This document shows, piece by piece, positions 3,209 through 64,000 of a stretch of DNA of 64,000 nt. The notes under the pieces are model-generated. The model searched no databases and had not been told where the DNA came from. It saw only the letters and a program-made list of their open reading frames with translations. The stretch is from the sequence record LC727697.1. One strand, 5' to 3'. Numbering within the stretch: position 1 is the first letter of the stretch; every line of letters begins with the position of its first letter. The translations under genes were made by a program, and so were the position numbers.

Positions 3209-3209
3209 A

Positions 3210-3674
3210 TTATTCCCAAGTTTTAGATAATAAATACACCAATCTGTCTTCTTCGTCAGGTCTGTTTAAAATGTCAATCATGGCAGATTTTAACAAGCCC
3301 TGTTTATCGTGTACTAGATCTCCGCCTTCTTCACCATAGTACCCCGATTCGATATCAAAATAAAAAGAATCTAGTGTATAACCGATAAAATGCATTATTT
3401 TTGCAAAATATTTTCTATCAGATTCAGTGATTTCATAGTAACTATGTTTGTAATCATCATATTTTCCATTATATCCTACTCGTCTCCATACAGACATTTT
3501 AGTTGGAAAAATATATTCGGGATTATCTGGTATACCATTTAGATCTGTATCTTCAAAATGTCCACAACGACATATACCTTCGTCATAACATCCACTATTT
3601 TCGCAATTATTTATGTATTTTATGTCCGAATCGTATCCTACAAACTCAAAACGTATATCAACTATGTCTGACAC
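3210..3674 (-). CDS. Hypothetical Cys-rich protein, paralogous to the N-terminus of 2510-3208
   Basis: GTG start. CENSGCYDEGICRC and ESGYYGEE motifs are shared with the neighbour. Confidence 0.6.
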   Translation of the reverse strand: MSDIVDIRFEFVGYDSDIKYINNCENSGCYDEGICRCGHFEDTDLNGIPDNPEYIFPTKMSVWRRVGYNGKYDDYKHSYYEITESDRKYFAKIMHFIGYTLDSFYFDIESGYYGEEGGDLVHDKQGLLKSAMIDILNRPDEEDRLVYLLSKTWE

Positions 3675-6609: not shown

Positions 6610-6628
6610 TTTTAAGTTATTCTCCTAA

Positions 6629-7735
6629 TTACTTAATGCCTGCCAGGCGTCTTAATTCTTCAACGCCTACAGATGAGTCATCTTGCTGGGCAACGCTAGA
6701 CGCCCTGTTACCAGTTTTTACAGCTCTTGCTGACTCAGTTAGAGCTTCTTTTTTACTTGCCGGTGCTGCACTACAATCTAGCACTGCTGGCAAATATTTG
6801 TTATATGCAACTTTTAAATGTTCTGTTTTTACAGACTCTAAAAGATCTTGCATTACGCTACGCTTTTCTTTATTTAGCGGAGCTAACAATTCAGACATTA
6901 CAGAGCTACGTTTAACACGCTCTTCTAATACAGAAATGCGAGTGCGTAGATTTTCTGCAAGTGCTTCACGTTCTTCTACATGAGATAAAGCTTCATTAAG
7001 GGCTTCTTCTTTTTGTATAAGAATATTTTTGAGTTTCTTAAGTTCACTACCTTCGTTTAGATGCGAAGTCATGTACTCTGCAGCAAAAGCTTCAAATAAA
7101 CGACGTCCAAAGTCATTTCGACGAGCAGCATCAATATCTTCTTTATATTGCTTTATTTCTTCTTGCAATACGCTATTAATGTTTGTGTCTACTATTTGCG
7201 ACGCTTTCTTTATGAACTGCTTTTTAGTTTCTGCTAATTGTTTTTTTGCTTCACTTATTAATTTAACTTTCTGACGAACTAATGCTTGCTTTTCTTCCCG
7301 AAGCTCTTTAACTTCGGTTGCAAGATTAGTGAGTGCAAACTCTTCTAGTTTCTCTAGATTGCCTTTAATTGCACGGCGATCTTCACGAAGTTCTTTGACT
7401 TCTTTAGAAACTGCATCTATTAAGAACTTATCGAGCATTTCGATATGTTCTTTTACTTGCATTTTAGCTTGAACTCGTTCGGCAGCTAGTTCTCGTTTGT
7501 CTTGAGCAAATTCTTCGATTTCACTGCGGATTTTTTCTTCTAAGAATTTGTCCATTGCTTCGACAAGTTGTTCTTTGTCGTGTGCAAACTTACGAGCAAA
7601 TTCTTCACGAAGCTCAGCAGTGAGTTCTTCTTTTACTTGTCCTATACGAGCTTCCCATGCTTCTGTAATAGCAGATTTTACTTCTGCACTTAAAGAAGTT
7701 TGTTCGTTTAGGATATGTTCGAACTTCACTGTCAT
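6629..7735 (-). CDS. gp22: Prohead scaffold / core protein, gp22-like
   Basis: Coiled-coil, Glu/Lys-rich, many LxE protease sites, positioned between the protease and capsid genes. Confidence 0.8.
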   Translation of the reverse strand: MTVKFEHILNEQTSLSAEVKSAITEAWEARIGQVKEELTAELREEFARKFAHDKEQLVEAMDKFLEEKIRSEIEEFAQDKRELAAERVQAKMQVKEHIEMLDKFLIDAVSKEVKELREDRRAIKGNLEKLEEFALTNLATEVKELREEKQALVRQKVKLISEAKKQLAETKKQFIKKASQIVDTNINSVLQEEIKQYKEDIDAARRNDFGRRLFEAFAAEYMTSHLNEGSELKKLKNILIQKEEALNEALSHVEEREALAENLRTRISVLEERVKRSSVMSELLAPLNKEKRSVMQDLLESVKTEHLKVAYNKYLPAVLDCSAAPASKKEALTESARAVKTGNRASSVAQQDDSSVGVEELRRLAGIK

Positions 7736-7747
7736 TTAAATCTCCTA

Positions 7748-8380
7748 CTATTTTTTCAATTCGGATATAAGTTTTATTATTTCCCTACTGAGATATTTAT
7801 CTGCACTAGGATCCTGTGGTGTGTTACGGGCTAAATCCATAATGATTTCGCCGCCTTTCATGTTGTATAAACTTTCATATATAGGTTTAGGATATGCATT
7901 AGGCGCGCTCGGTTGTGCAACAATGTCAACTGTTACAATATCAAAGTCGCTCACTACACCGTCATAACCTACATTACCTGAGCCGCGAGAACTTACGCCC
8001 AATTTGGCTCCGGCAGTTAATAAGCTTTTAGCAATAATTCCAGTAGGAGTATCTAATAATTTTAATTTGCCGTAGCCGCAGTTGCCTTCCATCCACATTT
8101 CTGTGATTATATGAGACACTCTGTCTAAATTAATAGTTAATTCTTCTGGATGATCGAGTTCTCCTAAAACAGAAAACCCTTCCTGTATTTTTGCTTTTAC
8201 TGATTCAACTGCATGAGATATTTCATGTAGGGGATAGATGCGCTGATTATGATTTTTTACATCACCTTGAATAAATATTCCGCGCATGAATAGATCACGG
8301 GCACCGTCAGGTCCGGTGCCGTGTTCTATTATTATCGATCCCTTAGATTGGGACATATATTCGTAAAGCTGTCTAGCCAT
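7748..8380 (-). CDS. gp21: Prohead protease, gp21-like
   Basis: GIFIQGDVKNHNQRIYP, LGELDHP, LGVSSRGSG and DIVAQPSAPNAY motifs. Confidence 0.93.
   Translation of the reverse strand: MARQLYEYMSQSKGSIIIEHGTGPDGARDLFMRGIFIQGDVKNHNQRIYPLHEISHAVESVKAKIQEGFSVLGELDHPEELTINLDRVSHIITEMWMEGNCGYGKLKLLDTPTGIIAKSLLTAGAKLGVSSRGSGNVGYDGVVSDFDIVTVDIVAQPSAPNAYPKPIYESLYNMKGGEIIMDLARNTPQDPSADKYLSREIIKLISELKK
7794..7802 (-). promoter_or_regulatory. Late promoter motif AGATAAATA for the scaffold and capsid genes
   Basis: Motif lies in the 3' end of the protease gene, just upstream of gp22. Confidence 0.55.
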
Positions 8381-8398
8381 ACTTATACTTATCCTAAA

Positions 8399-9211
8399 TT
8401 ACTTCTTAGGTGCTTTAGATAGGGGTGATTCTTTATCTACAGAACCAGTTTTACTTTTATTACCTGTTCCTGCTAATTTGCCTTCTTGTTTCATTGCAGG
8501 ATCGCTAACTTTTTCAGGAGTAGCTTCTGTATTCAAATCACACGATTCGTCTGCTTTTTTTGAAGCTTCGGCGCCTTGATTAGTAGATTTAGCAAATTTA
8601 ACAGGATCTACTCCGTAATTTTTCTTTTGAGTAGGTTTGCTAAAAGGTGATTCTTTATCTACAGAACCAGTTTTACTTTTATTACCTGTTCCTGCTAATT
8701 TACCTTCTTGTTTCATATCTACGTTTACAGAATCACTAAACTTAGTTGCTTCTTCTAAACTTTCAAATTTTTCTAGGGCATCAGCGGCAGCATCATCTAA
8801 ATCTTGTTCTAAATTAGGATGATACGGTTCATCTTCTTCTTGACTTACTAGAGTTTCAAATTCTGCTTTTAATGCAGCTAACTGAGCTTCTAGATCTTCT
8901 ACTTTATCTTCTATATCTTGATCAACATCAGCTTCTTCTTCATCTTCAGAATTTAATTCGCTAGACTGATCATCAAACATTTCATCTGCATCGATTTCTT
9001 CTTCGTCAGATTTAATGTCGTCGATAAACGATTCGCGGCTGTCGCCACCTACTTCTTCATTTACAAAATCTTCTTCAAAATCTGCAGATTCTTGTTCGTA
9101 AATATCACGAGCTTTAGCTACAACAATTTGATGTAATAATGCCGAAGCTTGTTCTGCATTTTCATTTAGTAGAAGATCTAGAACTTTTTCTAGTTCCTTA
9201 CGATGAGACAT
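8399..9211 (-). CDS. Acidic prohead core / internal head protein with a duplicated C-terminal motif
   Basis: Very Asp/Glu-rich, LxE sites, in the head gene cluster. MKQEGKLAGTGNKSKTGSVDKESP occurs twice. Confidence 0.6.
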   Translation of the reverse strand: MSHRKELEKVLDLLLNENAEQASALLHQIVVAKARDIYEQESADFEEDFVNEEVGGDSRESFIDDIKSDEEEIDADEMFDDQSSELNSEDEEEADVDQDIEDKVEDLEAQLAALKAEFETLVSQEEDEPYHPNLEQDLDDAAADALEKFESLEEATKFSDSVNVDMKQEGKLAGTGNKSKTGSVDKESPFSKPTQKKNYGVDPVKFAKSTNQGAEASKKADESCDLNTEATPEKVSDPAMKQEGKLAGTGNKSKTGSVDKESPLSKAPKK

Positions 9212-19810: not shown

Positions 19811-20823
19811 TATAGGTTTGTGTAAATGCTTATAAGTATGTTTTTATCAAAGTTATCACTTTGGATATTAGTTAGTTCGGAAATAACAATTTCATCTACA
19901 GTTTCGAATTCAGTTTCAGTATCACTTTCTATTTCGTGTTCGCTATATTTAGACTGTAATAATTTAAATTCTCTAACTTTATATGAAGACAAGAATGTTT
20001 CACGTAAGAAATTGGCTTCTTCGTATGTTATATCTACATCTATAGTTGCTTTTACGTGAGTTTTTGGCTTAAGATAATAATCTGGATTTTCTAGTATTTG
20101 TTTCAATGTAGTGGATATGAATCTAGGTCCGTCTTCGTAATTAACATATTCAGGCTCCCCTCCCCATTCTAAAAACATTGCACCCCTATCAAAATCCCAT
20201 ACATCAGAATAGTTGTGACCAAATGGATTGCCGATATAATTAATTTTTCCATTTACTTGTCTCTTATGAAAATGTCCAGAAAATACATATGTTTGATTAA
20301 CAAAATGTTCGGATTTTATTTCTCCTACATCGGGCATTTCTACCATTGCATTTAGTTTAAATCCTGGAATTTCTAAATGCCCAAACAAATATTTTGCTTT
20401 TATTTTAGGAACGTCTTTCCATTCATCTCCTACTAACCACGGTAGAATAGATACATCTCCTTGTTCGAACGGATCTTCTATCATAACTATATTAGGATAT
20501 TTGTGACCCATCGGAATAGAATGTACTTCTCTTTTTTCTCTATACATAAGGTCATGATTGCCAGTGATAAAATATACTTTTTCGAACGTATCGTTTAGTA
20601 GTTCTAAACTAGACATGGTGTAGTTTAGTGTAGATACATTAATGGTGTTTCTTGTATGATGCCAATCGCCTAAAAATATACATGTTTCTGCATTTTTTTC
20701 TTTAGCAGTTTTACAAAACCACTTAATGAAATCTTCACAGTCTTGATTGTGAATTTTAGAGTTATGATGCAATCCGAAGTGAATATCACTAAAACATGCA
20801 ACTTTCTTAAATAAATTACCCAC
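19810..20823 (-). CDS. gp47: Recombination nuclease, gp47/Mre11/SbcD-like
   Basis: SDIHFG, GDWHH, GNHD, GHLE and SGHFH metallophosphoesterase motifs. Confidence 0.93.
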   Translation of the reverse strand: MGNLFKKVACFSDIHFGLHHNSKIHNQDCEDFIKWFCKTAKEKNAETCIFLGDWHHTRNTINVSTLNYTMSSLELLNDTFEKVYFITGNHDLMYREKREVHSIPMGHKYPNIVMIEDPFEQGDVSILPWLVGDEWKDVPKIKAKYLFGHLEIPGFKLNAMVEMPDVGEIKSEHFVNQTYVFSGHFHKRQVNGKINYIGNPFGHNYSDVWDFDRGAMFLEWGGEPEYVNYEDGPRFISTTLKQILENPDYYLKPKTHVKATIDVDITYEEANFLRETFLSSYKVREFKLLQSKYSEHEIESDTETEFETVDEIVISELTNIQSDNFDKNILISIYTNL

Positions 20824-21779: not shown

Positions 21780-22415
21780 GTGGATAGTAGAGCAATTTTA
21801 AAACCAAAGAATGCGTTAGCTGCAAATGATTTATTTGGAGAAAGTAACGACCAGCTTGTTAACATTCTTGCACCTCTAAAAAAGACAGGCGGTTTGATAT
21901 TTCCGTTCAGACCGATAGTTACATTAGCAGCAGATGCAGAATACGATGAATCCTTTCATTTTACTCATACTAACTACAAATACCTTGCATATGTTAAATC
22001 TGCACCTCAGCCTATATCAGTAGAAGCAATATTTACATCACAAACAGATGTAGAGGCAAGATATACATTAGCAGCAATGCATTTTATGCGAACAGTAACA
22101 AAAAATTACTTCGGACAAACAGATTTAGTAAGAGCAGGTACGCCGCCGCCTATTTTATCATTTAATTACTTAGGAACATACATGTTCAAAAATGTACCAG
22201 TGGTTGTTAAAAATTTCAGTATTATTTTAGACAACAAAGTAGATTATGTCCCTGTAAGATTTAACAACATAAGTGAAAATACAGATGTTCCTACTCAATT
22301 AACTATGACGATAACGTTAGAACCTCAATATAATCCACAAGAGGTTAGGCAGACATTTGATCTAAGTAAATTTAGGACAGGTGAGTTACTGAAGAATAAT
22401 AAAGGATTTATATAA
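21780..22415 (+). CDS. Baseplate tail-tube initiator/cap protein (gp48/gp54-like)
   Basis: LIFPFRP, HFMRTVTK.YFG, GTPPP, NVPVVV and VDYV motifs of contractile-tail tube-like proteins. Confidence 0.7.
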   Translation: MDSRAILKPKNALAANDLFGESNDQLVNILAPLKKTGGLIFPFRPIVTLAADAEYDESFHFTHTNYKYLAYVKSAPQPISVEAIFTSQTDVEARYTLAAMHFMRTVTKNYFGQTDLVRAGTPPPILSFNYLGTYMFKNVPVVVKNFSIILDNKVDYVPVRFNNISENTDVPTQLTMTITLEPQYNPQEVRQTFDLSKFRTGELLKNNKGFI

Positions 22416-53902: not shown

Positions 53903-54007
53903 TTAGTTCTCCTGCTTGCCTGTGTTTTGAAACTTAACTTCATTATTGGAAAGATAATGACCAGCTTCTATGTTATATAGTTTCTTTATTAGTTCTGCGT
54001 ATGTCAT
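53903..54007 (-). CDS. 34-aa ORF MTYAELIKKLYNIEAGHYLSNNEVKFQNTGKQEN
   Basis: GAGGA RBS upstream of the ATG at 54007. Confidence 0.4.
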   Translation of the reverse strand: MTYAELIKKLYNIEAGHYLSNNEVKFQNTGKQEN

Positions 54008-54041
54008 TATCTTATCCTCAGTAAGATCCAGTGGGATTGGA

Positions 54042-54206
54042 TTACTTACTGTGATGTTCTCGGATGCACTTGGATTCGTCGTGCAGATTGCGGGCTTGTT
54101 CTGCCCAGGGGTGACCTGCAAAACAGAATCCGTGCCATTTGCTGCAAAGCATCCGGCGAAGTAACATGCAACGTTCGTTTTGAAGTCTGGCCAGTGCAGC
54201 ATTCAT
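54042..54206 (-). CDS. 54-aa Cys/His-rich ORF MNAALARLQNERCMLLRRMLCSKWHGFCFAGHPWAEQARNLHDESKCIREHHSK
   Basis: GGAGATAA RBS before the ATG. Lies in a different frame from track ORF 53903-54202. Confidence 0.6.
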   Translation of the reverse strand: MNAALARLQNERCMLLRRMLCSKWHGFCFAGHPWAEQARNLHDESKCIREHHSK

Positions 54207-54238
54207 GAACTTATCTCCAGGGCGTAGGGTTGTAGAGG

Positions 54239-54439
54239 TTACTCGCTAGCCACAAGCTGCACAAGCTGGCGCTGTGTGCCGTCGGGGCGGTTGCGAACGA
54301 TGCAGAACAGGGTAGCGGTGCGTCCGCAGCTACGATGCAATTCAGCTTCCTGCATCAACCAGCGCACCATGACCGCATTGTAGGCCGGGCGACGGTTTGC
54401 ATCAATTGCAATTTGCTTGACATCTACGATCTGGCTCAT
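54239..54439 (-). CDS. Hypothetical small high-GC protein
   Basis: GGAG RBS and its own promoter. Confidence 0.65.
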   Translation of the reverse strand: MSQIVDVKQIAIDANRRPAYNAVMVRWLMQEAELHRSCGRTATLFCIVRNRPDGTQRQLVQLVASE

Positions 54440-54478
54440 GGTTGCGCCCTCCGGGGCTTGCTGTGTTGCGTTGTAATT

Positions 54479-54507
54479 ATTATGCGCCCTTCGCTCGGCT
54501 ACGTCAA
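54479..54507 (-). promoter_or_regulatory. Early sigma70 promoter TTGACG-17-CATAAT
   Basis: Shares TTGACGTAG and CATAATAATTACAAC with 55890-55918. Confidence 0.75.
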
Positions 54508-54580
54508 CTTTTATTTATTGTTCCGCCGGGCGGTCAGCTAGCACCTTCCGGGCAATGTTTGCTCGCGGTGGCCAGTTGAG

Positions 54581-54829
54581 TTATTTCGTACCCTCCATCT
54601 TTGTGCAACTGTGTTTGGAAAAGCCCACGGCGATACCGCTCGTATCGCCAGAGCTACCGAAGTTCCTTGCCCGGATGTTCTTCACAACCGTTTCTCGCTC
54701 ACGCTTGAGCGCCTCGCAGTCTTCCTTGCTAAGGTCACGAACCACAATGGTGTCTGCTGTCGTCGAACGAGCGTAGGTGTTGTTGTTGAAGACAATGGTG
54801 GACAACAAGAGGTAGCTTGCAATGCTCAT
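54581..54829 (-). CDS. Hypothetical protein with a hydrophobic N-terminus (start MSIASY)
   Basis: ATGA-coupled to an upstream 19-aa ORF at 54826-54885. Confidence 0.55.
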   Translation of the reverse strand: MSIASYLLLSTIVFNNNTYARSTTADTIVVRDLSKEDCEALKRERETVVKNIRARNFGSSGDTSGIAVGFSKHSCTKMEGTK

Positions 54830-54906
54830 GGCTGTTCCATAGTCGCGCACTGGCGCAAACAATGCTTGGAGAGGTGCAGGTTCATCGTGTTATCTCCGGG
54901 GCTATA

Positions 54907-55398
54907 TTACTGAAGGATGAGAATCTTGCGAACGGGGCGGACCAACCAGGCGCTGCTCTTGATAGCGACACTAGCCTCGCCGTCGCCGAAGTGCATGCGG
55001 AAGGCGCCGCATGCGGAGTACTGCGAACTCGACCAGTACCAGCGATCTGCGAAACCAGACAGCTCGCCTGCTTGCTTGGCGGAGAACAGAAGAGCCAGTT
55101 CCAGAACAGAAGGAATGAATACGCCTTCTCCGATCTCCATAGCTTGCTTGGCAATCGGGCTGCCAGCTTCAGCCATGGCGACCGTGTTCGAAGCTCCGTC
55201 TCGGTAGCTGGCGGTGCCGTTCACATCCTGCCCATACTCGCCCCATTCTCCAGTGAACTCGGCGCTTTTGCCGAGATCGACGTAGGCGTATTCCTTGCCA
55301 TTGAGCCATTGGCGGGCAAAGAAGGTTCCATCAGCCAGGGGCTGGCCGATTTCGGGAAGGTCACTCGGATGAATCGAATCGGGGATGGTAGTGCTCAT
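54907..55398 (-). CDS. DUF1566 (Lcl C-terminal-like) domain protein
   Basis: IPSVLEL, WYWSSSQY and VRPVR motifs; high GC. Confidence 0.75.
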   Translation of the reverse strand: MSTTIPDSIHPSDLPEIGQPLADGTFFARQWLNGKEYAYVDLGKSAEFTGEWGEYGQDVNGTASYRDGASNTVAMAEAGSPIAKQAMEIGEGVFIPSVLELALLFSAKQAGELSGFADRWYWSSSQYSACGAFRMHFGDGEASVAIKSSAWLVRPVRKILILQ

Positions 55399-55431
55399 GG
55401 TTGGTTTCCTTGTCGGGTTGTGCGTGGTGGG

Positions 55432-55641
55432 TTATTGTGCGAACAGGGCGTGCAGGGCGGCTTCTTCGGACTTGCGCATTTCCAGGCACTGGGCATTTGC
55501 AATTGCCAGTTCCAAGGCTTCACACAATTCCCTGGCGTGGGCATGCAACTCGCTAGCGACGCGTCCGGTGTAGCGCAGTTTTTCGAGTTGGTTCATGCGC
55601 ATGCGTTGCGCTACGAGCATGTCTTTCAGTTGTTCGATCAT
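55432..55641 (-). CDS. Hypothetical helical protein
   Basis: AAGGA RBS; high-GC codon usage. Confidence 0.65.
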   Translation of the reverse strand: MIEQLKDMLVAQRMRMNQLEKLRYTGRVASELHAHARELCEALELAIANAQCLEMRKSEEAALHALFAQ

Positions 55642-55657
55642 GATCTTTTCCTTTAGT

Positions 55658-55682
55658 AAAGCCCCGCCTGGGGCGGGGCTTT
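55658..55682 (-). terminator. Terminator
   Basis: AAAGCCCCGCC-TGG-GGCGGGGCTTT hairpin. Confidence 0.75.
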
Positions 55683-55690
55683 AGTTGGTG

Positions 55691-55840
55691 TTAGGCTACG
55701 ATATCATAGCCGAGCCAAACCTGGGTGAGGACTTGGCCATGCCGGAAGATAACTTCGTAGCAGATATCGTTATCACTATCGCTCCAAATCCATGCGTAGG
55801 ACTCGCCGGCTTTGCTGTTCATGCATTGGATGTTGCACAT
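55691..55840 (-). CDS. 49-aa ORF MCNIQCMNSKAGESYAWIWSDSDNDICYEVIFRHGQVLTQVWLGYDIVA
   Basis: AGGAGG RBS, bracketed by a promoter and a terminator. Confidence 0.7.
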   Translation of the reverse strand: MCNIQCMNSKAGESYAWIWSDSDNDICYEVIFRHGQVLTQVWLGYDIVA

Positions 55841-55889
55841 AGTTTTGCCCTCCTGGGCTGGTTGCGTTGTGTTGCACTGTGTTGTAATT

Positions 55890-55918
55890 ATTATGTGTCC
55901 AATGCTAGTCTACGTCAA
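55890..55918 (-). promoter_or_regulatory. Early sigma70 promoter TTGACG-17-CATAAT
   Basis: Near-consensus with a 17-nt spacer. Confidence 0.75.
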
Positions 55919-55948
55919 CCTTTTTATCTGCAGGCGAGGCAGAGGATG

Positions 55949-56218
55949 TCAAAACTTGACACCGTGCTCGATATACCACTTAGCGGCATCCTCTGTCACA
56001 AAATCGCAACAGGCCAAAATTGTTTCGACGCTGCGGAGCCAACAATCGACAAAAGCGTCTGTATAACGGTTGGTTCCGTCTTCGTGGACTTTTACCCCGT
56101 CGGTGTGGGCGGCATTGTCCAGAGCTTCAAAATTGACTCGATGAACAATATCCATTGTGCTGCCGAAGACAGCTATAGGGAGGTCTTCGATAAGGCTAAG
56201 CAGACTACGCGCATCCAT
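55949..56218 (-). CDS. Hypothetical protein
   Basis: ORF track; same strand as its neighbours. Confidence 0.5.
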   Translation of the reverse strand: MDARSLLSLIEDLPIAVFGSTMDIVHRVNFEALDNAAHTDGVKVHEDGTNRYTDAFVDCWLRSVETILACCDFVTEDAAKWYIEHGVKF

Positions 56219-56305: not shown

Positions 56306-56521
56306 TTAGTTTCTACCGGTTTTGATACCGATGATAAAAGAAGTTCTCATATTAGTTGGTAAGGAATTGAAATATCGAAAGAAGTCAGTTAGGATAGCTT
56401 TGCCTTCTTTTATTTGAGTGCCTGCTTTTAATCCTTCAGTAAAAGCAATTTCTTTTGTCATGATAATGTACTCATGATTGTGTATATGTTTTAGCATACA
56501 TGTATATTTGTAAATATGCAA
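56306..56521 (-). CDS. Hypothetical protein (true start probably internal, MTKEIAF)
   Basis: ORF track; GAG upstream of the internal ATG. Confidence 0.45.
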   Translation of the reverse strand: MHIYKYTCMLKHIHNHEYIIMTKEIAFTEGLKAGTQIKEGKAILTDFFRYFNSLPTNMRTSFIIGIKTGRN

Positions 56522-56525
56522 CTGG

Positions 56526-56849
56526 CTATTGTTTGATCTTAGATAAATGCTTTATTGTAGATTCATAGTCTTTAAACGAAGTAGGTATGTAGCTAGTCTT
56601 ATATTCACTAGCATTATATAATGACATTAGTAATAAGGTAACCGCTTGATTAATATTGTATGCTGTTTTTGATTTTATACTGAATACATGAATGTAACTA
56701 GTTGGATCATCATTAATTCCAGGCAGAATATTCCAACTAGTTATAGTTGCATAAGGTTTTACTACCTGGCGCATTTGAGTAATAAATGCTGCAAATGCGC
56801 CAGGACGGGGTGATTCATTACATATAATGCATTTAATTACTTCAATCAT
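56526..56849 (-). CDS. Hypothetical protein
   Basis: ORF track. Confidence 0.6.
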   Translation of the reverse strand: MIEVIKCIICNESPRPGAFAAFITQMRQVVKPYATITSWNILPGINDDPTSYIHVFSIKSKTAYNINQAVTLLLMSLYNASEYKTSYIPTSFKDYESTIKHLSKIKQ

Positions 56850-57033
56850 ATATGTTTTACCATTATTATTGAATATAATTATAAGAAATAAAAAACACTA
56901 TATGTATAATAACACATAGTGTTTTAGATACAACTGGAATTACTTCTTAGGTACTTTTTAGTATTCAAAGTTCATTGTAGTAAGCCATTTCATCCAAGTT
57001 AGTAATGTTATTGGAATGGATGGTCTGATCTGT

Positions 57034-57058
57034 GCAAATAAGAATAATTTGTATTTGC
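57034..57058. promoter_or_regulatory. Fur-box-like palindrome GCAAATAAGAAT-A-ATTTGTATTTGC
   Basis: Member of a repeated intergenic palindrome family (see findings). Confidence 0.55.
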
Positions 57059-57076
57059 ATTTGCATTTGACTTAAT

Positions 57077-57106
57077 AAAAAGAAAGGGGCATTGCCCCTT
57101 TCTTTT
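57077..57106 (-). terminator. Terminator
   Basis: AAAGAAAGGGGCA-T-TGCCCCTTTCTTT. Confidence 0.8.
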
Positions 57107-57114
57107 GTCACTAA

Positions 57115-57348
57115 CTAAACTGTTTCACCGAAATCAATAATTACACCTAATTCTAAATTATTTTTTCGGATATGTTTTGATAGGAGTGTTTGTGCATCGA
57201 GACGCCCAAACGCATGTAATGTAATAGTTCTTTTTTTGAACAAACTTTCTGTTGCTTTATTCCGTGCAGTGTACTGAATGACAAATTTAGTTGGAATTGC
57301 CTTTGTTTTTGGCATTGGGCGTGGATTTGTATTCAGTTTGCGGTACAT
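57115..57348 (-). CDS. Hypothetical basic protein
   Basis: AGGAG RBS; TTGACA-17-TATGCT promoter at 57376-57404. Confidence 0.7.
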   Translation of the reverse strand: MYRKLNTNPRPMPKTKAIPTKFVIQYTARNKATESLFKKRTITLHAFGRLDAQTLLSKHIRKNNLELGVIIDFGETV

Positions 57349-57420
57349 GTATATCTACTCCTTGCTGTTTTATACAGCATAATATGATCTTATGTACATG
57401 TCAATCATTTTTATTATATT

Positions 57421-57909
57421 TCAACTAATAAAATATGGTTTAGGTGTCTTTGTATATGTAGCATAAATGGGTCTGTTAGATCTCGATGCCCATTCTTTAA
57501 ATTTGTCATTTAAATATAACTGATATGAATGTGTTACATTACCTGTTTTAAATTCGTCTGGCATAACTAAGACAAACTCTGTTCTTTCTATATTAGGGAG
57601 TTTTGGTATAGTTTTTAATGACGAAAGGTGAATTTTAGTTGCATGTTGTTTGTCAAATCTATATTCAAATTCATTTATAAGACTTGTAAGAAGTTCATAA
57701 GTCCATTCATAGTTTTTTGAACTTTCTCTAATCCAAACGGCACATGGATGATTTTTATGAGTAGGTTTATATGCAGGAGTATATCCGTTTATTATATAAT
57801 GAGTAGTGCTTAACAATTGTGCTGTTTCTACTATCATCTTTCTTAGATGAACATCACAATGATGTTTGGCACATACATAAGGATTTGTGTCAGTCACAAA
57901 TATATTCAA
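57421..57909 (-). CDS. denV: Pyrimidine-dimer DNA glycosylase family (T4 endonuclease V-like)
   Basis: MNIF...HCDVHLRKMIVETAQLLS and YKPTHKNHPCAVWIRES..NYEW motifs. Confidence 0.75.
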   Translation of the reverse strand: MNIFVTDTNPYVCAKHHCDVHLRKMIVETAQLLSTTHYIINGYTPAYKPTHKNHPCAVWIRESSKNYEWTYELLTSLINEFEYRFDKQHATKIHLSSLKTIPKLPNIERTEFVLVMPDEFKTGNVTHSYQLYLNDKFKEWASRSNRPIYATYTKTPKPYFIS

Positions 57910-58065
57910 TTTATATTACCTACAATGTTTAATGTGTAAAATACAGTATTCAGTATGATTTGTAAATAAGAGTTATTATTATGTCAGAATAGATGCAAAT
58001 AAGAATATTTGTTATTAACAGTCATAGAGAAAGCACCTTTCGGTGCTTTCTCGGTGTAGTCCGGA

Positions 58066-58503
58066 TTATGCTTCCGGCTGGGCTTCTTTGCGCTTCTTCG
58101 AGCTGCCTTTCTTCGCCGGGGCAGCGTCGCCGGACTGGACTGCGTGGTCGGCGACCTGGACTACTGCCTTGACCAGGTTGTGGGCTTGCTCTTCCTTGCT
58201 CAGCGTGCTGGCCGGCATCTCGGCGCCTTCTTTGCCGTCGGTCAGGATGAACAGGATTGCTTGTTCCATCGCCCGGGCGATCCGGATCGCGCTGAACACG
58301 CCTTTCTGTTCGAGGACGATGTCCTTGCCGTTGATGTTGGCGTCGATCTTCGCCGACCAGGTGCGCTGGGTTTTGGTCTTGTAGAACGCTTCGCTGCTGC
58401 CTACTTCGACGCCGTTCAGCAGCAGGGCTTGCCGGTGCCCTTCCAGGTTGCGGCGGACCAGTTTGATTGCGGATTGCTCGACGGTAACGGTTGCTTTGGT
58501 CAT
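58066..58503 (-). CDS. Hypothetical high-GC early protein in its own cassette
   Basis: AGGAG RBS, TTGTAC-18-TATACT promoter at 58569-58598, and a GAAAGCACC/GGTGCTTTC terminator at 58027-58052. Confidence 0.75.
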   Translation of the reverse strand: MTKATVTVEQSAIKLVRRNLEGHRQALLLNGVEVGSSEAFYKTKTQRTWSAKIDANINGKDIVLEQKGVFSAIRIARAMEQAILFILTDGKEGAEMPASTLSKEEQAHNLVKAVVQVADHAVQSGDAAPAKKGSSKKRKEAQPEA

Positions 58504-58670
58504 GATTTGGAACTCCTAGCTGTATTTGGGTTTGTCTATGAAGCGCTGTTTGCTTGCTTCATGTGTGTAGTATATGCAGATCTGGCCACCATGTACAATT
58601 GAACGTTTTAATGGACTTTGTAGATTCTAATAGATTTTATCTAACGAAGATTAGGTACAGTAGCCTGCTG

Positions 58671-58695
58671 GATAATAAGAATTATTCGCATTTGC
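58671..58695. promoter_or_regulatory. Fur-box-like palindrome GATAATAAGAAT-T-ATTCGCATTTGC
   Basis: 14/19 match to the E. coli Fur consensus GATAATGATAATCATTATC. Confidence 0.55.
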
Positions 58696-58835
58696 ATTTG
58701 CTTGCAAATAATTAAAATTAAATAAGGAACGGAACTATAGGTGCTAAGCCAAACATTAACAATGAAATAATAATGAATATCAGTAGTATGCCAACACTGA
58801 CAACTGAAGTTAATAAAAGGGATTTTAATATAAAT

Positions 58836-59144
58836 TCAATCATGTAACTTAAATATCCTTCTACACAGGTAATATTCAATACATTCATTTATATCAGGTG
58901 ATGTAACTCTAAAACCTGATACTACATATTCTTTTTTCGATAAATTTAATTCTAATTCTAATATGTTCTTTTTAGTATTTAATCCAGAAACAATTAATCG
59001 TGTGTTTGGTACCATATGTTCTTTAAAATTAAGAAACTTTGCTACAGCATGGAAGTCGTTACTTGTAATGTAACGTTCTATATCACAAATATTAGTCTCA
59101 ACGCCTGTGTTGACTATTCCGTGGACTACATATACATTATACAT
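58836..59144 (-). CDS. Hypothetical protein
   Basis: Starts 1 nt after the upstream stop. Confidence 0.6.
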   Translation of the reverse strand: MYNVYVVHGIVNTGVETNICDIERYITSNDFHAVAKFLNFKEHMVPNTRLIVSGLNTKKNILELELNLSKKEYVVSGFRVTSPDINECIEYYLCRRIFKLHD

Positions 59145-59145
59145 A

Positions 59146-59517
59146 CTATTTCTTATATATTTCTAAAGTATTACCAACCCTTTCCATACAACCGTTAAAT
59201 ATGGCTAGAGGGATAATCTTTCTTTCTTCAGTAGATGAAAACTCATATACGTTATCAATTAATTTTGAAATATTTGCTTGAGCCTGCAAGAACGCAAGCC
59301 ATTTACTATTATTATTCTTATATAAATTAGATACAATATCCATATGAGATGCAATTTGTATTGCATTCATATGTTCATTTACTACCATATCGACATGAAT
59401 CTTAGATAATTCCAGAAGTGTAAGGCATGTTTCGTTAGTTATCTTAACTTCAGTAATAGATTCTGCAGAAACTAGTGTAGACAAAGACAATGCAATAGAA
59501 GCAATAACAAATTTCAT
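59146..59517 (-). CDS. Predicted exported protein
   Basis: Sec-type signal peptide MKFVIASIALSLSTLVSA. Confidence 0.6.
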   Translation of the reverse strand: MKFVIASIALSLSTLVSAESITEVKITNETCLTLLELSKIHVDMVVNEHMNAIQIASHMDIVSNLYKNNNSKWLAFLQAQANISKLIDNVYEFSSTEERKIIPLAIFNGCMERVGNTLEIYKK

Positions 59518-59597
59518 AATTAGCCTAATACGGGAAGTTATACACTAAGCTATTATATTTTTAATTATTATTTTTTGTCAAATGAATAATATTGGTC

Positions 59598-59755
59598 AAA
59601 AAAAAGCTGCTCCGGGCAAGCCCTTTGCAGCTCAAGAACGGTACACCCAAACCAGTGTACCAAGAACCAAGTCAGGAGCATTAGCTCAACACATACTTGG
59701 TAGCAGGAGTTACAACTAACAGCAAAACAAATTAATACGTCTTGCTGCAAACTTG
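59598..59755 (-). ncRNA. Candidate ~160-nt structured small RNA
   Basis: TTGCAT-17-TATTAT promoter (59761-59789), stacked hairpins, U-tract terminator, and no RBS-led ORF. Confidence 0.55.
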
Positions 59756-59790
59756 AGTACATAATACATATACGTTACAGCTAATGCAAG

Positions 59791-60171
59791 TTATTTTTTA
59801 AAATCAATATAAGTGACGTTTTCTTCTTTCTTTATTACATGTTTCTTTTCTTCACAATCAATTGCATTAGAAATTTGACCGTGAAGTTCGTTAACATACT
59901 TCTCATCAAGAACAATGTACATGATGATCCCGGCGGGACTAATAATCCGGTGACTATGGCTTATATAGTTTCCCAAATAGGCCAATACTTCGATTTCTGC
60001 ACGTAATCCAATTTTAACTTCTGCTATACTTGCATCAATTTTGTTTTTGATCCATTCTTTCAGTTGATCTTGAGCAGACACAAAATTGATATGAGCTTTA
60101 AGATATCGAACATAGTCGAACTTATCGCCTTCTTTGTCATATGCAGTTGCGACTAATGCTATGAGTGCCAT
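59791..60171 (-). CDS. Hypothetical protein
   Basis: AGGAG RBS; TTGACA-17-CATTAT promoter at 60198-60226. Confidence 0.7.
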   Translation of the reverse strand: MALIALVATAYDKEGDKFDYVRYLKAHINFVSAQDQLKEWIKNKIDASIAEVKIGLRAEIEVLAYLGNYISHSHRIISPAGIIMYIVLDEKYVNELHGQISNAIDCEEKKHVIKKEENVTYIDFKK

Positions 60172-60354
60172 AATGGTATCTCCTGCTTTGTGTGTGCATA
60201 ATGTAGCCTACAGCAAGGAATGTCAAGAGGAAAATTCTACAAAAAATGCTTGCATGCAGATACAAATATGCTATTATCTTTATACAGAGACCAGTAATAG
60301 GGCGGGGGAGACAATCACCCAGGCTGCCTAAAATTTAGGCAGATAGGTAGGAAT

Positions 60355-60379
60355 GCAAATGCGAATAATTCTTATTTGC
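60355..60379. promoter_or_regulatory. Fur-box-like palindrome GCAAATGCGAAT-A-ATTCTTATTTGC between divergent promoters
   Basis: Near-perfect 12-1-12 inverted repeat. Confidence 0.6.
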
Positions 60380-60524
60380 AAAACATGAAGTCGTAGAAAA
60401 TGTTATAACAGAATAGATGCTAATAATATTTTATTTGAAAGAAAATGGAAGAAAATTCTTGCATTAGCACACGAATAGCGTATACTACACATAACAAAGC
60501 AAAACAACGCAGGAGTAACAGAAA

Positions 60525-60764
60525 ATGATGCAACTACGCGCACATAACGCTAACAAGGAAAATTTCAATTACTGCGTGTTTATCGAAGCGTTCCAGGAAG
60601 GTAGTCAAATTGTTGCAAATGTGGTACGCAACTATGAAGACGGGACTACTGAAATACTGTATAGCTTCAAAGGTCCCAACAGCCTGAACGTAAGAACGCA
60701 AATGCGCAAAAAGAAAGTACGTATGATGCAAGTCAAAAGTGGCAAGCATTTGTTGGGACTATAA
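60525..60764 (+). CDS. Hypothetical protein; the only plus-strand gene supported in the accessory region
   Basis: AGGAG RBS, TTGCAT-16-TATACT promoter at 60459-60486, and a terminator at 60764-60790. Confidence 0.7.
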   Translation: MMQLRAHNANKENFNYCVFIEAFQEGSQIVANVVRNYEDGTTEILYSFKGPNSLNVRTQMRKKKVRMMQVKSGKHLLGL

Positions 60765-60807
60765 GAAAAGGGGCAATGCCCCTTTTCTTATGACTATAAT
60801 TTCTGCA

Positions 60808-60990
60808 TTATAATACTTCTTCAAATTCTTCGTCGTAGTCGACTGTCACATAAGATGTGAGTTTAGCCAAAGTATTTACTAGTGTAATATCTATTGCACA
60901 CCGACCTTTAGAAATTTTCTGGATAGTCATTTTCATGCCATTGTAGAAAACAACATCACCTACAGCTAACTCAGTTGCTTTGGTTTGCAT
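60808..60990 (-). CDS. Small beta-rich (SH3/KOW-like) hypothetical protein
   Basis: LAVGDVV motif, AGGAG RBS, and TTGCAT-17-TAGTAT promoter at 61021-61049. Confidence 0.65.
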   Translation of the reverse strand: MQTKATELAVGDVVFYNGMKMTIQKISKGRCAIDITLVNTLAKLTSYVTVDYDEEFEEVL

Positions 60991-61120
60991 GTATAACGCT
61001 CCTGACTTTATTTTTTTAATATACTAGCACAGTGCCGCTAGCTATGCAACTAGAATTTGCTTTTATTTTAAAAGTAAACAAGAATTTATTATAATTGCAA
61101 ATAAGAATTATTATTATATT

Positions 61121-61172
61121 TCCAATTATCAAATCCAATTATCAAATCCAATTATCAAATCCAATTATCAAT
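61121..61172. repeat. Four tandem 13-mers TCCAATTATCAAA
   Basis: Three exact copies plus one with a final mismatch. Confidence 0.9.
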
Positions 61173-61455
61173 CGGTCATTACACTTACTGATAGAATAGT
61201 AGATGGCATTTCATCTTTCTTAAACTTGATAGGCACAATATCTACATAAACAAGTTTTGAACCTAATGTGTGTTCTAATGGTTTGTATATACGGGCAAAT
61301 ACCAAATTACGTTTTGTAGAACTATTTTCACATTCTATCTTATAATGGAAGTCTACTCTTTTATACTGAGTTTTTACTACAGTACGTAAAGAGACTATCT
61401 TAATTTTATTAGATAAGATAGTCTTCGAAACAATATTTTTTAAATCATCTTCCAT
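61168..61455 (-). CDS. Hypothetical protein
   Basis: ORF track. Confidence 0.6.
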   Translation of the reverse strand: MEDDLKNIVSKTILSNKIKIVSLRTVVKTQYKRVDFHYKIECENSSTKRNLVFARIYKPLEHTLGSKLVYVDIVPIKFKKDEMPSTILSVSVMTD

Positions 61456-61466
61456 ATTATATTATA

Positions 61467-61874
61467 TTAATTGTCTTTTTCAACACAAGTAAGGAAATAA
61501 AGTTCACACTCTTCTTTCCAGTTAGATAAAAACGTCGGTTTAAAAACACCCAAAATATTTGTGCTAGGGAGAATGTCTTTATATTGATCAACGTAACTAT
61601 TGACATCTTTGAGTTCGATGTCAATGCGCCCGTCCATAACCATTTTTAATGCTGCCGATTTAACGCATAGTGGACTATGAGGATTATTTACTATCCTATT
61701 TGCGCATGCCAATTCTGCGTCAGAAATAATACGCTTTATTTGGCTACACACATTTATGTCACTTTCGAGCCATATTTGTTGAGTGTAGCAAAGGTTGTTA
61801 TAAACAGGATCTATTACAAACAATTTGCATTTGAACATGGTTAACACTCCTGTAGTAATATAATTTATAAACAC
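61467..61874 (-). CDS. Hypothetical protein (true start probably MFKCKLF)
   Basis: AGGAG RBS before the internal ATG. Confidence 0.6.
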   Translation of the reverse strand: MFINYITTGVLTMFKCKLFVIDPVYNNLCYTQQIWLESDINVCSQIKRIISDAELACANRIVNNPHSPLCVKSAALKMVMDGRIDIELKDVNSYVDQYKDILPSTNILGVFKPTFLSNWKEECELYFLTCVEKDN

Positions 61875-62056
61875 ATTGTGCTATATTCTACATATAGGTG
61901 TCAAGTTAATTTTATTCTTGCTTTTGTAATATACTTGTGTTATAAGTGCGGGATCGTGCAAATAAGAATTATTCTAATTTTAATTAAATAAAATTAATTC
62001 TTATTTATAAGTATATTATACATAAAAGGAAAGGGGAATTAATCCCCTTTCCTTTA

Positions 62057-62362
62057 TTATGCTATTTGATAACTTACTTCATTACCGTTAGTAATCTTTA
62101 CACAAACATCAATGTCAACCATTCCTGTGTAGTCTGGTTCCTGAATAGTAATGAAAATATACATGCTGTTTTGTTCCAGGCTGCAAGTTGGATCACCCTT
62201 ACATTGCCATTCAGCATTACCTGCATTAACAGCATTGGATACCTGTTCTAAAGTAACACTACCCGTAGCCTTCCAAACATCAATGCCATATGCCCCTTCA
62301 GCATAAATGAATGATTTAAAGGTTGGAAAAATCTCTAACAACCGCTTCAATTCTGCTGACAT
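62057..62362 (-). CDS. Hypothetical protein
   Basis: AGGAG RBS, TTGCAA-17-TATTAT promoter at 62394-62422, and a terminator at about 62024-62057. Confidence 0.7.
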   Translation of the reverse strand: MSAELKRLLEIFPTFKSFIYAEGAYGIDVWKATGSVTLEQVSNAVNAGNAEWQCKGDPTCSLEQNSMYIFITIQEPDYTGMVDIDVCVKITNGNEVSYQIA

Positions 62363-62511
62363 GTTATATCTCCTGTTTTGTGTTGCTGTACATATAATAT
62401 TGTCATTGCCTTAGCATTGCAACATATAAAATGTAACAAGCAAACAAGACTTAATCTTATCCGGTATACACATACACTATGTTAGGAGAAAAATCAAGTG
62501 AATATTTGTTC

Positions 62512-62571
62512 TAAGATTAGTTCTTATTTGCGTGGCGGGGATATTATCATTGCAAATAAGAACTAATCTTA
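62512..62571. repeat. Perfect 20-bp inverted repeat TAAGATTAGTTCTTATTTGC / GCAAATAAGAACTAATCTTA
   Basis: Arms at 62512-62531 and 62552-62571 with a 20-nt spacer. Confidence 0.9.
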
Positions 62572-62804
62572 ACAAATGCATATTAAAAAGGGCTTACAAA
62601 TTGCAAGCTCTTTGTGTTACGCTGCAGGGTTATTTTTTCAGAATTATTCTTATTCAGTTTCTTTGTTGTTAATAAGAACTTATTATCAGGCCTAATCAAG
62701 AATGCGTCTTATTTGCATTGTGCTTTTACCACAACCGTAATAGTTCTTATTTGCACAGAAATTGCAGACAAAAGAAAAGGGCTTGCGCCCCTTCCTTTTT
62801 TGTG

Positions 62805-63125
62805 CTAGCTGTTAGCTTCCAGAAAGTCCATTACACCCTTTGCAGTGCCGTTGTCAAAGAAAAGGTGCGTGTCCATGCGTTCCACAACAAATCCGTAGTA
62901 GTCCCAGCCTACTATCCATCCTGCATACTTGTCAACCAATTTGTAGCAGGGATAGTCTGAATCCTCGTAGTGCGGCAGTTCCTGGGACAGCTGGACTAAC
63001 ACATAGTCTATGCCGTTGTCAACAAAACTTTGTAGGAGTTCCTCGTAGTGATTTTTAATGGAAACTGTAGAAACGTTGTCCTCTGGGACTAGTGCGTCCC
63101 AGTTAAAACCTTTAAAGTCAACCAT
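62805..63125 (-). CDS. Hypothetical acidic protein
   Basis: AGGA RBS, TTGCGT-16-TAGTAT promoter at 63168-63195, and a terminator at about 62770-62800. Confidence 0.7.
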   Translation of the reverse strand: MVDFKGFNWDALVPEDNVSTVSIKNHYEELLQSFVDNGIDYVLVQLSQELPHYEDSDYPCYKLVDKYAGWIVGWDYYGFVVERMDTHLFFDNGTAKGVMDFLEANS

Positions 63126-63343
63126 TTTCTTATCCTGCTATTAATGTTTATAGGTACTGCAATACACATACTAGCACCTGTGTAGCATAACGCAAGCTTT
63201 TTCTTTTTGTGAACAATTCTTATCACCCAGCCGTATCAAGAATGCCTCTTGTTTGCATTCGCATCTCACTGCCCTGTGCAAATAAGAATAATTTGCATTT
63301 ACACTTAGGACATAAAAGGAAAGGGGCAGTTGCCCCCTTTCCT

Positions 63344-63646
63344 TTAGTAATTGCGCTGGTACCCGGCAACTACACTGACGTCTCTGCCTTTAATGTAGAT
63401 CTTGCGTGCGCCGCCGAACCAGTGTCCACAACAGTCTCTCGAGCAGCTACAGCTTTGCTCCATGAGCTGGTACACTGCCTTACGGAGTGCCCAACTGCTA
63501 GCACGAACACCACGGGGCAGACGCAGTCGAACAACGTCGATAGTCTCGATATCGATCGGACTGTTCGGATTGCGGACAGTGTGTTTACTGACAACCTTGC
63601 GGGCAGTCACAACACGCCCGTTGATCCACAGATGAACGAGATTCAT
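63344..63646 (-). CDS. Hypothetical protein with a CSCSRDCCGH motif
   Basis: AGGAG RBS; terminator at about 63313-63345. Confidence 0.7.
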   Translation of the reverse strand: MNLVHLWINGRVVTARKVVSKHTVRNPNSPIDIETIDVVRLRLPRGVRASSWALRKAVYQLMEQSCSCSRDCCGHWFGGARKIYIKGRDVSVVAGYQRNY

Positions 63647-63657
63647 GGTGTCTCTCC

Positions 63658-63906
63658 TTAGTTGCTATCTTCGGCAATGACGTACAAAGTAACGCCGCAG
63701 CCCGGAGGAACTAGGCGCCACTGCACGTCGTACGCTCTCAGTGCGTCGTAATGGCTAGCAAACACGGGAGCGTTGGGACCAACAACCTTAACCTTGCCCA
63801 TCATTGCACAGCGCTTGATTGCGTGCAACAAGGCGCTGTCGAGGTCTACAGATGTAAACACTTCGGCGATGTTGCCGATGCTGTTAACATGCAATACTTT
63901 AGCCAT
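63658..63906 (-). CDS. Hypothetical protein
   Basis: AGGAG RBS; TTGCAT-16-TAGTAT promoter at 63947-63974. Confidence 0.7.
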   Translation of the reverse strand: MAKVLHVNSIGNIAEVFTSVDLDSALLHAIKRCAMMGKVKVVGPNAPVFASHYDALRAYDVQWRLVPPGCGVTLYVIAEDSN

Positions 63907-64000
63907 TGTCTGTTGCTCCTGCTAGTTATGTGTTACTGCTAAACACATACTAACATCTTACCGCAGTAATGCAACAGGAGATTGACTTGTGCAAATGCAA

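Follow-up and report, generated by a model that had tools for sequence, protein, structure and literature searches.

The 64,000-nucleotide stretch of DNA analysed here (the window) belongs to sequence record LC727697.1, and its positions 56500-64000 are the final part of the Pseudomonas phage 30-2 record (100% identity), where a 25-bp imperfect palindrome that resembles the binding site of the host iron regulator Fur recurs between small early genes. Window positions equal record positions minus 223165, while coordinates given as L002 refer to the other end of the record and start at its first bases. Phage 30-2, with a genome of 287 kb and 33% GC in a host of 66% GC, is a PA5oct-like jumbo phage that depends on the host RNA polymerase, and positions 56500-64000 are 96-98% identical to PA5oct, MIJ3, Ettore, Paride and six further Wroclawvirus jumbo phages of P. 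aeruginosa. According to the PA5oct omics paper, the matching stretch falls inside a 39-kb long terminal repeat with 105 small genes, many of which are strongly transcribed early by the host RNA polymerase. The same paper lists 32 sigma-70-like promoters and 36 terminators, and the palindrome is not among the elements it reports, nor is iron a subject that it mentions. The record of phage 30-2 was opened in the middle of a palindrome within the terminal-repeat region (window 64000 / L002 1), thus its deposited ends are assembly cuts and not the physical ends of the genome.

The element, GCAAATAAGAAT-N-ATTCTTATTTGC, is a 12-1-12 palindrome of the form GCAAAT-RMGAAT-N-ATTCTT-ATTTGC, with eight or nine full sites and five half sites in the part from 57034 to 64000. 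Matches to the consensus reach 20 or more of 24 positions at 57034, 57995, 58671, 60355, 61097, 61958 and 63278, while the rest of the 64-kb window does not exceed 18/24. The 12-mer with up to two mismatches occurs 36 times against 16.1 expected, a number reached in 0 of 100 shuffles, and 57034-63289 holds every exact copy and all one-mismatch copies but one. The series goes on for ~20 kb further in the record (L002 581, 1463-1573 with four sites, ~3950, 6519, 7945, 9824, 13772, 18192 and 19908-20025 with three sites), with ~23 sites within ~27 kb of the early terminal-repeat region. In PA5oct coordinates, the sites cover ~8.67-35.47 kb of the terminal repeat, and the first 8.6 kb consist of genes without sites. 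An earlier reading of the letters of the window (the original prediction) had placed such palindromes in intergenic DNA and had seen none in the structural region. Both observations hold, since all sites are intergenic with respect to annotated coding sequences (CDS) and open reading frames (ORFs), and window 1-57000 and the other 223 kb of the genome have palindrome matches at chance level only. There is about one site, or one cluster, per early transcription unit, and tandem arrays with a spacing of 29-47 bp occur in phage 30-2 and its relatives. Across 11 close relatives, the divergence is too low for the conservation of the sites to be read as purifying selection. A scan of IMG/VR, a collection with no PA5oct-like contig, gave 0 matches to the full pattern and only single chance matches, in 113 contigs, to a looser one.

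All positions listed in the original prediction carry the motif, but not all of them carry it in full (scores in bits refer to the Fur matrix described below). The site at 57034-57058 is a full 12-1-12, Fur-box-like palindrome (22/24, 15.5 bits), ~14 nt past the terminator at 57083-57100 in minus-strand transcription. At 57995-58019, directly after the hairpin terminator 58027-58052, a perfect left arm is joined to a degenerate right arm (20/24, 10.8 bits), and a weaker secondary site adjoins it at 57962-57986 (18/24, 10.4 bits). The full palindrome at 58671-58695 (20/24, 16.9 bits) lies upstream of the GC-rich gene 58066-58503, is followed by extra ATTTGC hexamers and, as recomputed here in agreement with the earlier count, matches the E. 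coli Fur consensus at 14/19 positions. The palindrome at 60355-60379 (22/24, 19.6 bits) is inverted and lies ~80 nt upstream of a promoter-like TTGCAT(60459)-16 nt-TATACT(60486) of the sole plus-strand gene, 60525-60764, so that its orientation matches the strand of its gene. The site at 61097-61121 (20/24, 18.5 bits; repeat family D6) adjoins a tandem repeat at 61121-61171, which consists of four head-to-tail copies of the 13-bp unit TCCAATTATCAAA and at which alignments to relatives end, thus the copy number of the repeat seems to vary among relatives. Two adjacent sites at 61958-61982 and 61984-62008 (17.2 and 14.3 bits) follow the terminator 62030-62049 at a cassette junction. At 62507-62576, two conserved arms face each other across a 20-nt spacer as a large inverted repeat and score as half sites (0.4 and 2.0 bits), and two single conserved arms at 62692-62716 and 62730-62754 (5.4 and -4.5 bits) follow the terminator 62775-62795. 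The entries 62512/62552 and 62696-62755 of the original prediction thus retain the conserved arm but are not full palindromes, as they are single arms TCTTATTTGC with less than 6 bits. After the terminator 63320-63339, a half site (63232-63256, a single arm that also scores less than 6 bits) and a full palindrome (63278-63302, 18.7 bits) are found together (families D1, D8 and D9), and the ~70-bp site-plus-terminator module of 63232-63302 is repeated at neighbouring junctions. The partial site foreseen at the right edge starts at ~63997 (63997-64000), where window and record stop before its end, and L002 1-19 supplies the missing part (family D4 of L002); its sequence equals that of the site at L002 581 (12.9 bits). 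In Ettore and Cassandra, the inverted repeat at 62507-62576 has mirror changes, as T replaces C where the left arm ends and A replaces G where the right arm starts. Gene conversion between the two arms, or selection that maintains their symmetry, could be behind this pattern.

The information content of the motif is sharply bounded, with flanks at ~0 bits outside the 25 bp. One arm, TCTTATTTGC(A), is almost invariant and faces the downstream gene in 19 of 24 sites, while the other arm is looser and often contains two GCAAAT-like hexamers, as in GCAAATGCGAAT. Dyad symmetry was observed as at least 8 of 12 self-complementary pairs in 14 of 24 sites, for which the background probability is 0.007. 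Of 87 deviations in the weak arm, only 4 have a compensating change in the opposite arm, and this lack of compensation points to a protein site, so that an RNA or DNA hairpin was ruled out. The sites of IHF, DnaA, Fis, GacA, Zur, PsrA and similar proteins, compared informally with the motif, fit neither in spacing nor in sequence. A fixed-spacing promoter element, either MotA-box-like or with the -35 within the site, was ruled out as well, as the -10 is found at no consistent distance.

Following the direction of transcription, the site usually lies 5-20 nt past an intrinsic terminator and is followed by a promoter of the form TTGCAT/TTGACA-N16-17-TAnnnT. The terminators that precede many sites form a conserved family, AAAGGGGC..GCCCCTTT with a T run, represented by 57083-57100 on the minus strand (families D3 and D4) and also by 58027-58052, 62030-62049, 62592-62608, 62775-62795 and 63320-63339. 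Terminator scans gave 18 against 7.2 expected and 34 against 13.4, whereas promoters were called by consensus only, a promoter scan being not above chance in this AT-rich DNA. The sites end 16 to ~100 nt upstream of the nearest -35-like hexamer, as read by eye, and the distance to the promoter is 16-22 nt in one promoter family and 36 to ~100 nt elsewhere. The position upstream of the -35 box had been recognised correctly in the original prediction, but its spacing of 50-130 nt has to be replaced by a wider range, from ~16-22 to ~100 nt. An overlap with -35/-10, as in classical Fur repression, is not seen for the phage sites; their place upstream of the promoter argues against classical occlusion and fits anti-silencing, iron gating or titration better.

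The similarity to Fur boxes depends on the register in which the sites are compared. Against the E. coli 19-mer GATAATGATAATCATTATC, the sites match at 9-14 of 19 positions (median 11-12), and only 2 of 23 reach the at least 14/19 of the Fur-box rule quoted in PMC6922518; matches of at least 12/19 are common in this AT-rich genome (~22 per 10 kb). This low similarity follows from a 3-bp difference in register, and boxes whose centre is displaced in this way are known to be misjudged by the rule (PMC1790865). The 19-mer also spans no more than a portion of the 25-mer. In X. campestris, as Blanvillain et al. (PMC1790865) demonstrated, the Fur box AATGAgAATcATTctCATT has to be moved by 3 bp before it agrees with the E. 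coli consensus. When the middle 19 bp of the phage palindrome, AATAAGAAT-N-ATTCTTATT, are compared with the X. campestris consensus, each arm has a single mismatch. Eijkelkamp et al. (PMC3055841) reported that the Fur motif of A. baumannii is a palindrome of 25 nt with its centre at position 13, and listed its boxes. A symmetrised Fur matrix was built solely from 19 of these published iron-responsive boxes, hence from Acinetobacter and not from Pseudomonas, and was run over the 287-kb genome. The 11 top positions are all motif sites in the exact 25-nt register, with 15.3-22.3 bits, and the phage sites overall score 10.8-22.3 bits in that register, compared with 12.4-25.9 bits (median 19.7) for the 19 A. 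baumannii boxes themselves in a leave-one-out test. At a threshold of at least 12.4 bits, there are 16 matches in the 27.1-kb zone against 4 in the other 260 kb, i.e., a 38-fold density (Poisson 3e-20). For comparison, 1.07 Mb of unrelated viral contigs, a set biased upward, gave ~4 matches per 100 kb. The X. campestris 19-mer matrix performed more weakly, although the enrichment was still seen (5 vs 3 matches).

Further support comes from bacterial genomes, in which GCRAAYRMGAATNANTCTTATTYGC was searched in one genome per species for 185,579 species. Ten isolated copies were found, where ~0.5 would be expected by chance according to our estimate with equal base frequencies, and nine of them are in genomes of 47-68% GC. 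Based on Pfam matches of the neighbouring genes, five copies lie directly upstream of TonB-dependent receptors (L131, L134 and L136), of feoA-feoB (L138) and of tonB (L139); the other five comprise one terminator hairpin (Cytophagales) and four uninformative contexts. Judged by their sequence, the interpretation of the full sites as Fur boxes of ordinary to good quality is supported. The A. baumannii matrix, the 38-fold enrichment and the iron-gene context of the bacterial copies thus back the original prediction of Fur-box-like palindromes upstream of early promoters, and the position weight matrix scan with a proteobacterial Fur matrix that it had proposed returned the motif sites as the top 11 genome positions, with the weaker X. 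campestris matrix enriched as well.

Considering these results, we propose with moderate confidence that the palindromes are Fur boxes at which Fur would act as an upstream anti-silencer, boundary, activator or iron gate. Several observations weigh against this proposal. The matrix stems from Acinetobacter, and the binding of Fur to the phage sites is a prediction. The best-conserved arm has an A (AATAAG) where Arg57 of Fur contacts a G (AATGA), and an A at this position is found in a minority of real published boxes (3 of 19). Classical Fur boxes overlap promoters, which the phage sites do not. The two arms differ greatly in conservation and the orientation relative to transcription is the same in 19 of 24 sites, a pattern more suggestive of the descent of a junction module by copying, or of a binder without symmetry, than of a selected site for a symmetric dimer. 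Besides, the PA5oct omics paper mentions no iron genes among the host responses, which are possibly just not discussed there, and both multi-site arrays of phage 30-2, which has no further ones, precede members of one phage protein family, P1-P3.

This family is made up of GC-rich paralogues, all three of which follow sites. P2 (145 aa, window 58066-58503, minus strand) lies behind site 58671, P3 (L002 659-1114, minus strand) behind the four-site array L002 1463-1573, and P1 (L002 18824-19528, minus strand), the PA5oct virion protein EST35_0038, behind the three-site array L002 19908-20025. They have in common a beta-rich domain of ~85 aa, for which six strands and one helix are predicted (pLDDT ~90), and, after it, a Pro/Ala-rich acidic linker that leads into a basic tail. 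A word-index homology search gave orthologues only, and a PDB profile search, Pfam and Foldseek against PDB and BFVD gave no informative neighbour. An exhaustive HMMER search retrieved remote homologues only on uncultured phage-like metagenome contigs, namely L126 (ENA ERZ28573244 scaffold_1384), L127 and L128 (Logan SRR27947012) and L129 (Logan SRR15882454). These contigs have 47-51% GC and rows of small same-strand genes, are mostly not alignable to phage 30-2 and are probably uncultured relatives with a GC-richer early region. The palindrome is present in three of the four (L126, L128 and L129), L127 having one edge site only. The motif core occurs 11 times in L126 against 0.47 expected, together with terminator and promoter families like those of PA5oct-like phages. 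In L126 and L128, arrays of 4-5 sites with 29-bp spacing are found 290-450 nt upstream of the family gene (L126 2683-2805 before 3089-3568; L128 3189-3310 before 3762-4181).

These observations raise the question of whether the sites are read by a phage-encoded binder, with the P1/P2/P3 family as best candidate, which would switch delayed-early units and autoregulate through the arrays, the likeness to Fur boxes being coincidence or mimicry. Such a binder would fit the asymmetric and oriented sites, the position of the arrays, which stand before family genes again, with four and five sites, in the diverged metagenomic relatives, and the presence of P1 in the PA5oct virion. The site-free first 8.6 kb of the terminal repeat would suit an immediate-early class that could encode a regulator. 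DNA binding by P1-P3 is, however, hypothetical, as no Pfam, PHROG or PDB sequence match and no significant structural neighbour was obtained for them, and the linkage of arrays and genes could have been inherited as synteny or indicate that Fur controls the family strongly. A new protein is also not needed for a motif that already equals chromosomal Fur boxes, and a factor made after infection would be useless for the very first transcription unless it was injected. We consider a phage-encoded reader unlikely on balance.

The search for other regulators among ~48 early proteins with Pfam and PHROG gave no DNA-binding hit except a DenV-like pyrimidine-dimer glycosylase. The gene concerned, 57421-57909 on the minus strand, is labelled 'DNA binding protein' in Ettore, Paride and Cassandra, but its product is a DenV-like pyrimidine-dimer DNA glycosylase (phrog_624, E 7e-52; the Pfam Pyr_excise match is just under the cut-off), and it was ruled out as a regulator. 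Around the arrays themselves, purine-rich low-complexity direct repeats of 12-18 bp lie upstream of both multi-site arrays (L002 1578-1661 and 20018-20125), and one of these repeats is annotated in PA5oct as the CDS of an 'extensin-like protein' that is probably spurious. A GC-rich, GCGC-laden leader of 300-450 nt separates the array from the P3-type gene (L002 1115-1460 and L128 3310-3760). It contains an element, GTCTATTA..N..TAATAGA..CAATTGTACAA, that is common to phage 30-2 and the diverged L128 and may be a structured leader or a second operator.

The sites also mark the places where related genomes differ, and the alignments to PA5oct, Ettore, PAC2, MIJ3 and Cassandra are interrupted at the sites or next to them. 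At 61969, or 61969 vs 62026, MIJ3, PAC2 and Cassandra break right after the conserved arm, with an extra gene between duplicated site-plus-terminator modules. In PAC2, a cassette of three additional genes is enclosed by two ~130-bp promoter-site-terminator repeats near the 63232-63302 module, Ettore has a deletion between two arms (62717 vs 62745), and MIJ3 and Cassandra have an extra GC-rich gene just downstream of site 57034; at the indel 56988 vs 57022, a site is present on one side only. L126 and phage 30-2 have cassettes in common that are 74-86% identical and differently ordered. Such an arrangement, in which a stem-loop terminator followed by a sigma-70-type promoter is repeated between small genes and indels and swaps are bounded by these elements, is the one that defines the PeSL elements of T4-type phages. 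It identifies the regulatory junctions as the units by which PA5oct-like phages and their uncultured relatives exchange cassettes. Recombination that copies junctions may be the reason why one arm is invariant and one orientation prevails.

The motif might even have no binding function and be the core of a self-propagating PeSL-like terminator-promoter junction that spread with the cassettes, its Fur-like look arising from AT-rich palindromy. Indels that begin at or beside sites among PA5oct-like phages, duplicated modules that flank extra cassettes, the junctions retained between phage 30-2 and L126 despite the different cassette order, longer repeat families that take in spacer and terminator, and the predominance of a single arm and a single orientation are all in line with this idea. 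On the other hand, at most copies conservation falls to background outside the 25 bp, the dyad symmetry is retained and the core is identical in relatives whose flanking DNA no longer aligns. The exact-register match to an independent Fur matrix and to bacterial iron-gene promoters would also be unexpected for a junction repeat, and we regard a motif devoid of binding function as very improbable.

Coming back to Fur itself, the sequence data suggest a mechanism in which the host Fe2+-Fur, already present in the cell, would bind the sites once the phage DNA enters. From its position, the bound Fur would counteract silencing, set a boundary or activate from upstream, and would not repress by occlusion. 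In P. aeruginosa, MvaT and MvaU coat AT-rich foreign DNA, and the Pseudomonas phage LUZ24 encodes an MvaT inhibitor. Fur may thus keep these xenogeneic silencers off the 33% GC phage DNA, as it does with H-NS at E. coli ftnA, and early phage expression would thereby be tied to an iron-replete host physiology. PMC6922518 cites work in which upstream, at times tandem, Fur boxes displace a silencer at ftnA and bfr. The terminator-site-promoter junctions would double as joints for the gain, loss and reshuffling of small gene cassettes. We infer Fur binding, the direction of its effect and the involvement of MvaT from the sites and their position. A 33% GC genome whose transcription rests on the host polymerase right from minute one requires a factor that pre-exists in the cell, and Fur is one; this is why anti-silencing, boundary function or iron gating is ranked first, at about even chances, with the titration of Fur following as a clearly weaker possibility.

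In that second scenario, host Fur would again be bound but mainly to be titrated, and the derepressed siderophore, haem and Feo uptake, together with the PrrF RNAs, would feed iron to NrdAB and QueE. The same Fur-box evidence (matrix, enrichment and bacterial iron-gene context) applies here, and sites that do not lie over promoters and are at variable distance from the -35 are compatible with a sponge. Tandem arrays of 3-5 sites with 29-47-bp spacing, in phage 30-2 and relatives, would add to the capacity, and since the sites lie inside the long terminal repeat there are two sets per packaged genome, i.e., ~46 boxes from ~23, a dose that replication multiplies further. Besides, phage 30-2 codes for the iron-dependent enzymes nrdA/nrdB and queE (radical-SAM). 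A sponge is at odds, however, with the presence of about one site per transcription unit, always at a terminator-promoter junction, which has a cis-regulatory look and not that of a decoy. At one genome copy, ~46 sites are also a small number compared with the thousands of Fur molecules in an E. coli cell. For PAO1 infected with PA5oct, the omics paper does not mention a response of the iron regulon, which may only mean that the topic is not covered there. Titration as the main purpose of the sites is therefore an unlikely explanation in our assessment.

A broader combination of these ideas is also conceivable, and we advance it tentatively, as rather unlikely. The ~46 Fur boxes per packaged genome would either form a sponge that derepresses the host iron regulon or be read by a virion-delivered P1-P3 family with an evolved Fur-box specificity, and the boxes would also be the recombination joints of an integron-like cassette array. 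If P1-P3 read Fur boxes, the phage could compete with Fur on its own DNA as well as on the host chromosome.

Compared with known systems, the phage sites are similar to gamma- and betaproteobacterial Fur boxes (PMC3055841, PMC1790865) in length, in the 12-1-12 geometry with a 9-1-9 core and in register, and single published boxes such as GCGAATAATAATAATTCTTATTTAT and GATAATAAGAATTATTTTTATTTGT are nearly identical to the phage motif. Unlike bacterial Fur boxes, they are found in a lytic phage, not before iron genes, and upstream of -35/-10. They also differ from most Fur boxes in their near-invariant arm with an A for the G of AATGA, and Fur binding to them is predicted. The boxes of E. coli ftnA (Nandal et al. 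2010, as cited in PMC6922518) are likewise upstream and partly tandem in silencer-prone AT-rich DNA. By analogy with ftnA and H-NS, the putative silencer here would be MvaT/MvaU, and unlike there, arrays stand 290-450 nt from their genes. The PeSL of T4-type phages (PMC2839356, PMC4122927) are likewise junctions of terminator and sigma-70 promoter between small ORFans in a hyperplastic early region, and both the indels or cassette swaps between close relatives and the stem-loop A3-4G3..C3T3-4 resemble those of phage 30-2. In phage 30-2, however, a third element, the 25-bp palindrome, lies between stem-loop and promoter.

TF1 of the Bacillus phage SPO1 is a further case in which a long terminal repeat full of host-takeover genes has many specific binding sites for a protein close to early promoters. 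TF1 is phage-encoded, HU-like and prefers hydroxymethyluracil DNA, whereas the best candidate binder in phage 30-2 is a host regulator and not a phage protein. Host Fur also controls cargo of temperate phages, as at the stx1 promoter. The sitABCD operon of temperate lambdoid coliphages (PMC6969025) likewise has a host Fur box on a phage genome. In both cases there is a single box before one iron-related or toxin cargo operon in a lysogen, in contrast to the approximately two dozen boxes before early genes of unknown function in phage 30-2, which is strictly lytic. Our literature search gave no report of a lytic phage with two dozen Fur boxes organising its early region, and a search for the exact motif strings returned nothing relevant.

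Some additional features of the region were noticed. Islands of 54-60% GC are present in this 33% GC phage at window 54000-56000 as well as at 58040-58510 and 63340-63900. A plus-strand ORF in the first island, 54817-55656 (279 aa), stops exactly at a strong terminator, 55657-55683, and no CDS was seen on the corresponding strand in the PA5oct annotation. Pfam gave nothing for the 54000-56000 island except a sub-threshold Lcl_C match for the minus-strand ORF 54907-55398, and Rfam gave phage tRNAs only. Two abundant PA5oct 'ncRNAs' (2-5% of phage reads), at PA5oct 8263-8498 and 21951-22401, correspond to L002 ~20200-20500 and 6575-7025 and stop 170 nt and 32 nt, respectively, upstream of palindrome sites.

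Fur boxes as such are textbook elements, and single ones on prophage cargo genes are already known. The number and arrangement of the sites described here suggest that the phage reads or manipulates the host iron regulator. If Fur binds them, PA5oct-like phages would offer a test case for how a 33% GC phage that depends on the host polymerase achieves its transcription in a host of 66% GC by which AT-rich DNA is silenced. PA5oct-like phages are candidates for therapy, and Paride kills dormant cells. Upon Fur binding, infection by this group would be predicted to depend on iron, which is scarce at infection sites, and host iron uptake might be rewired during infection.

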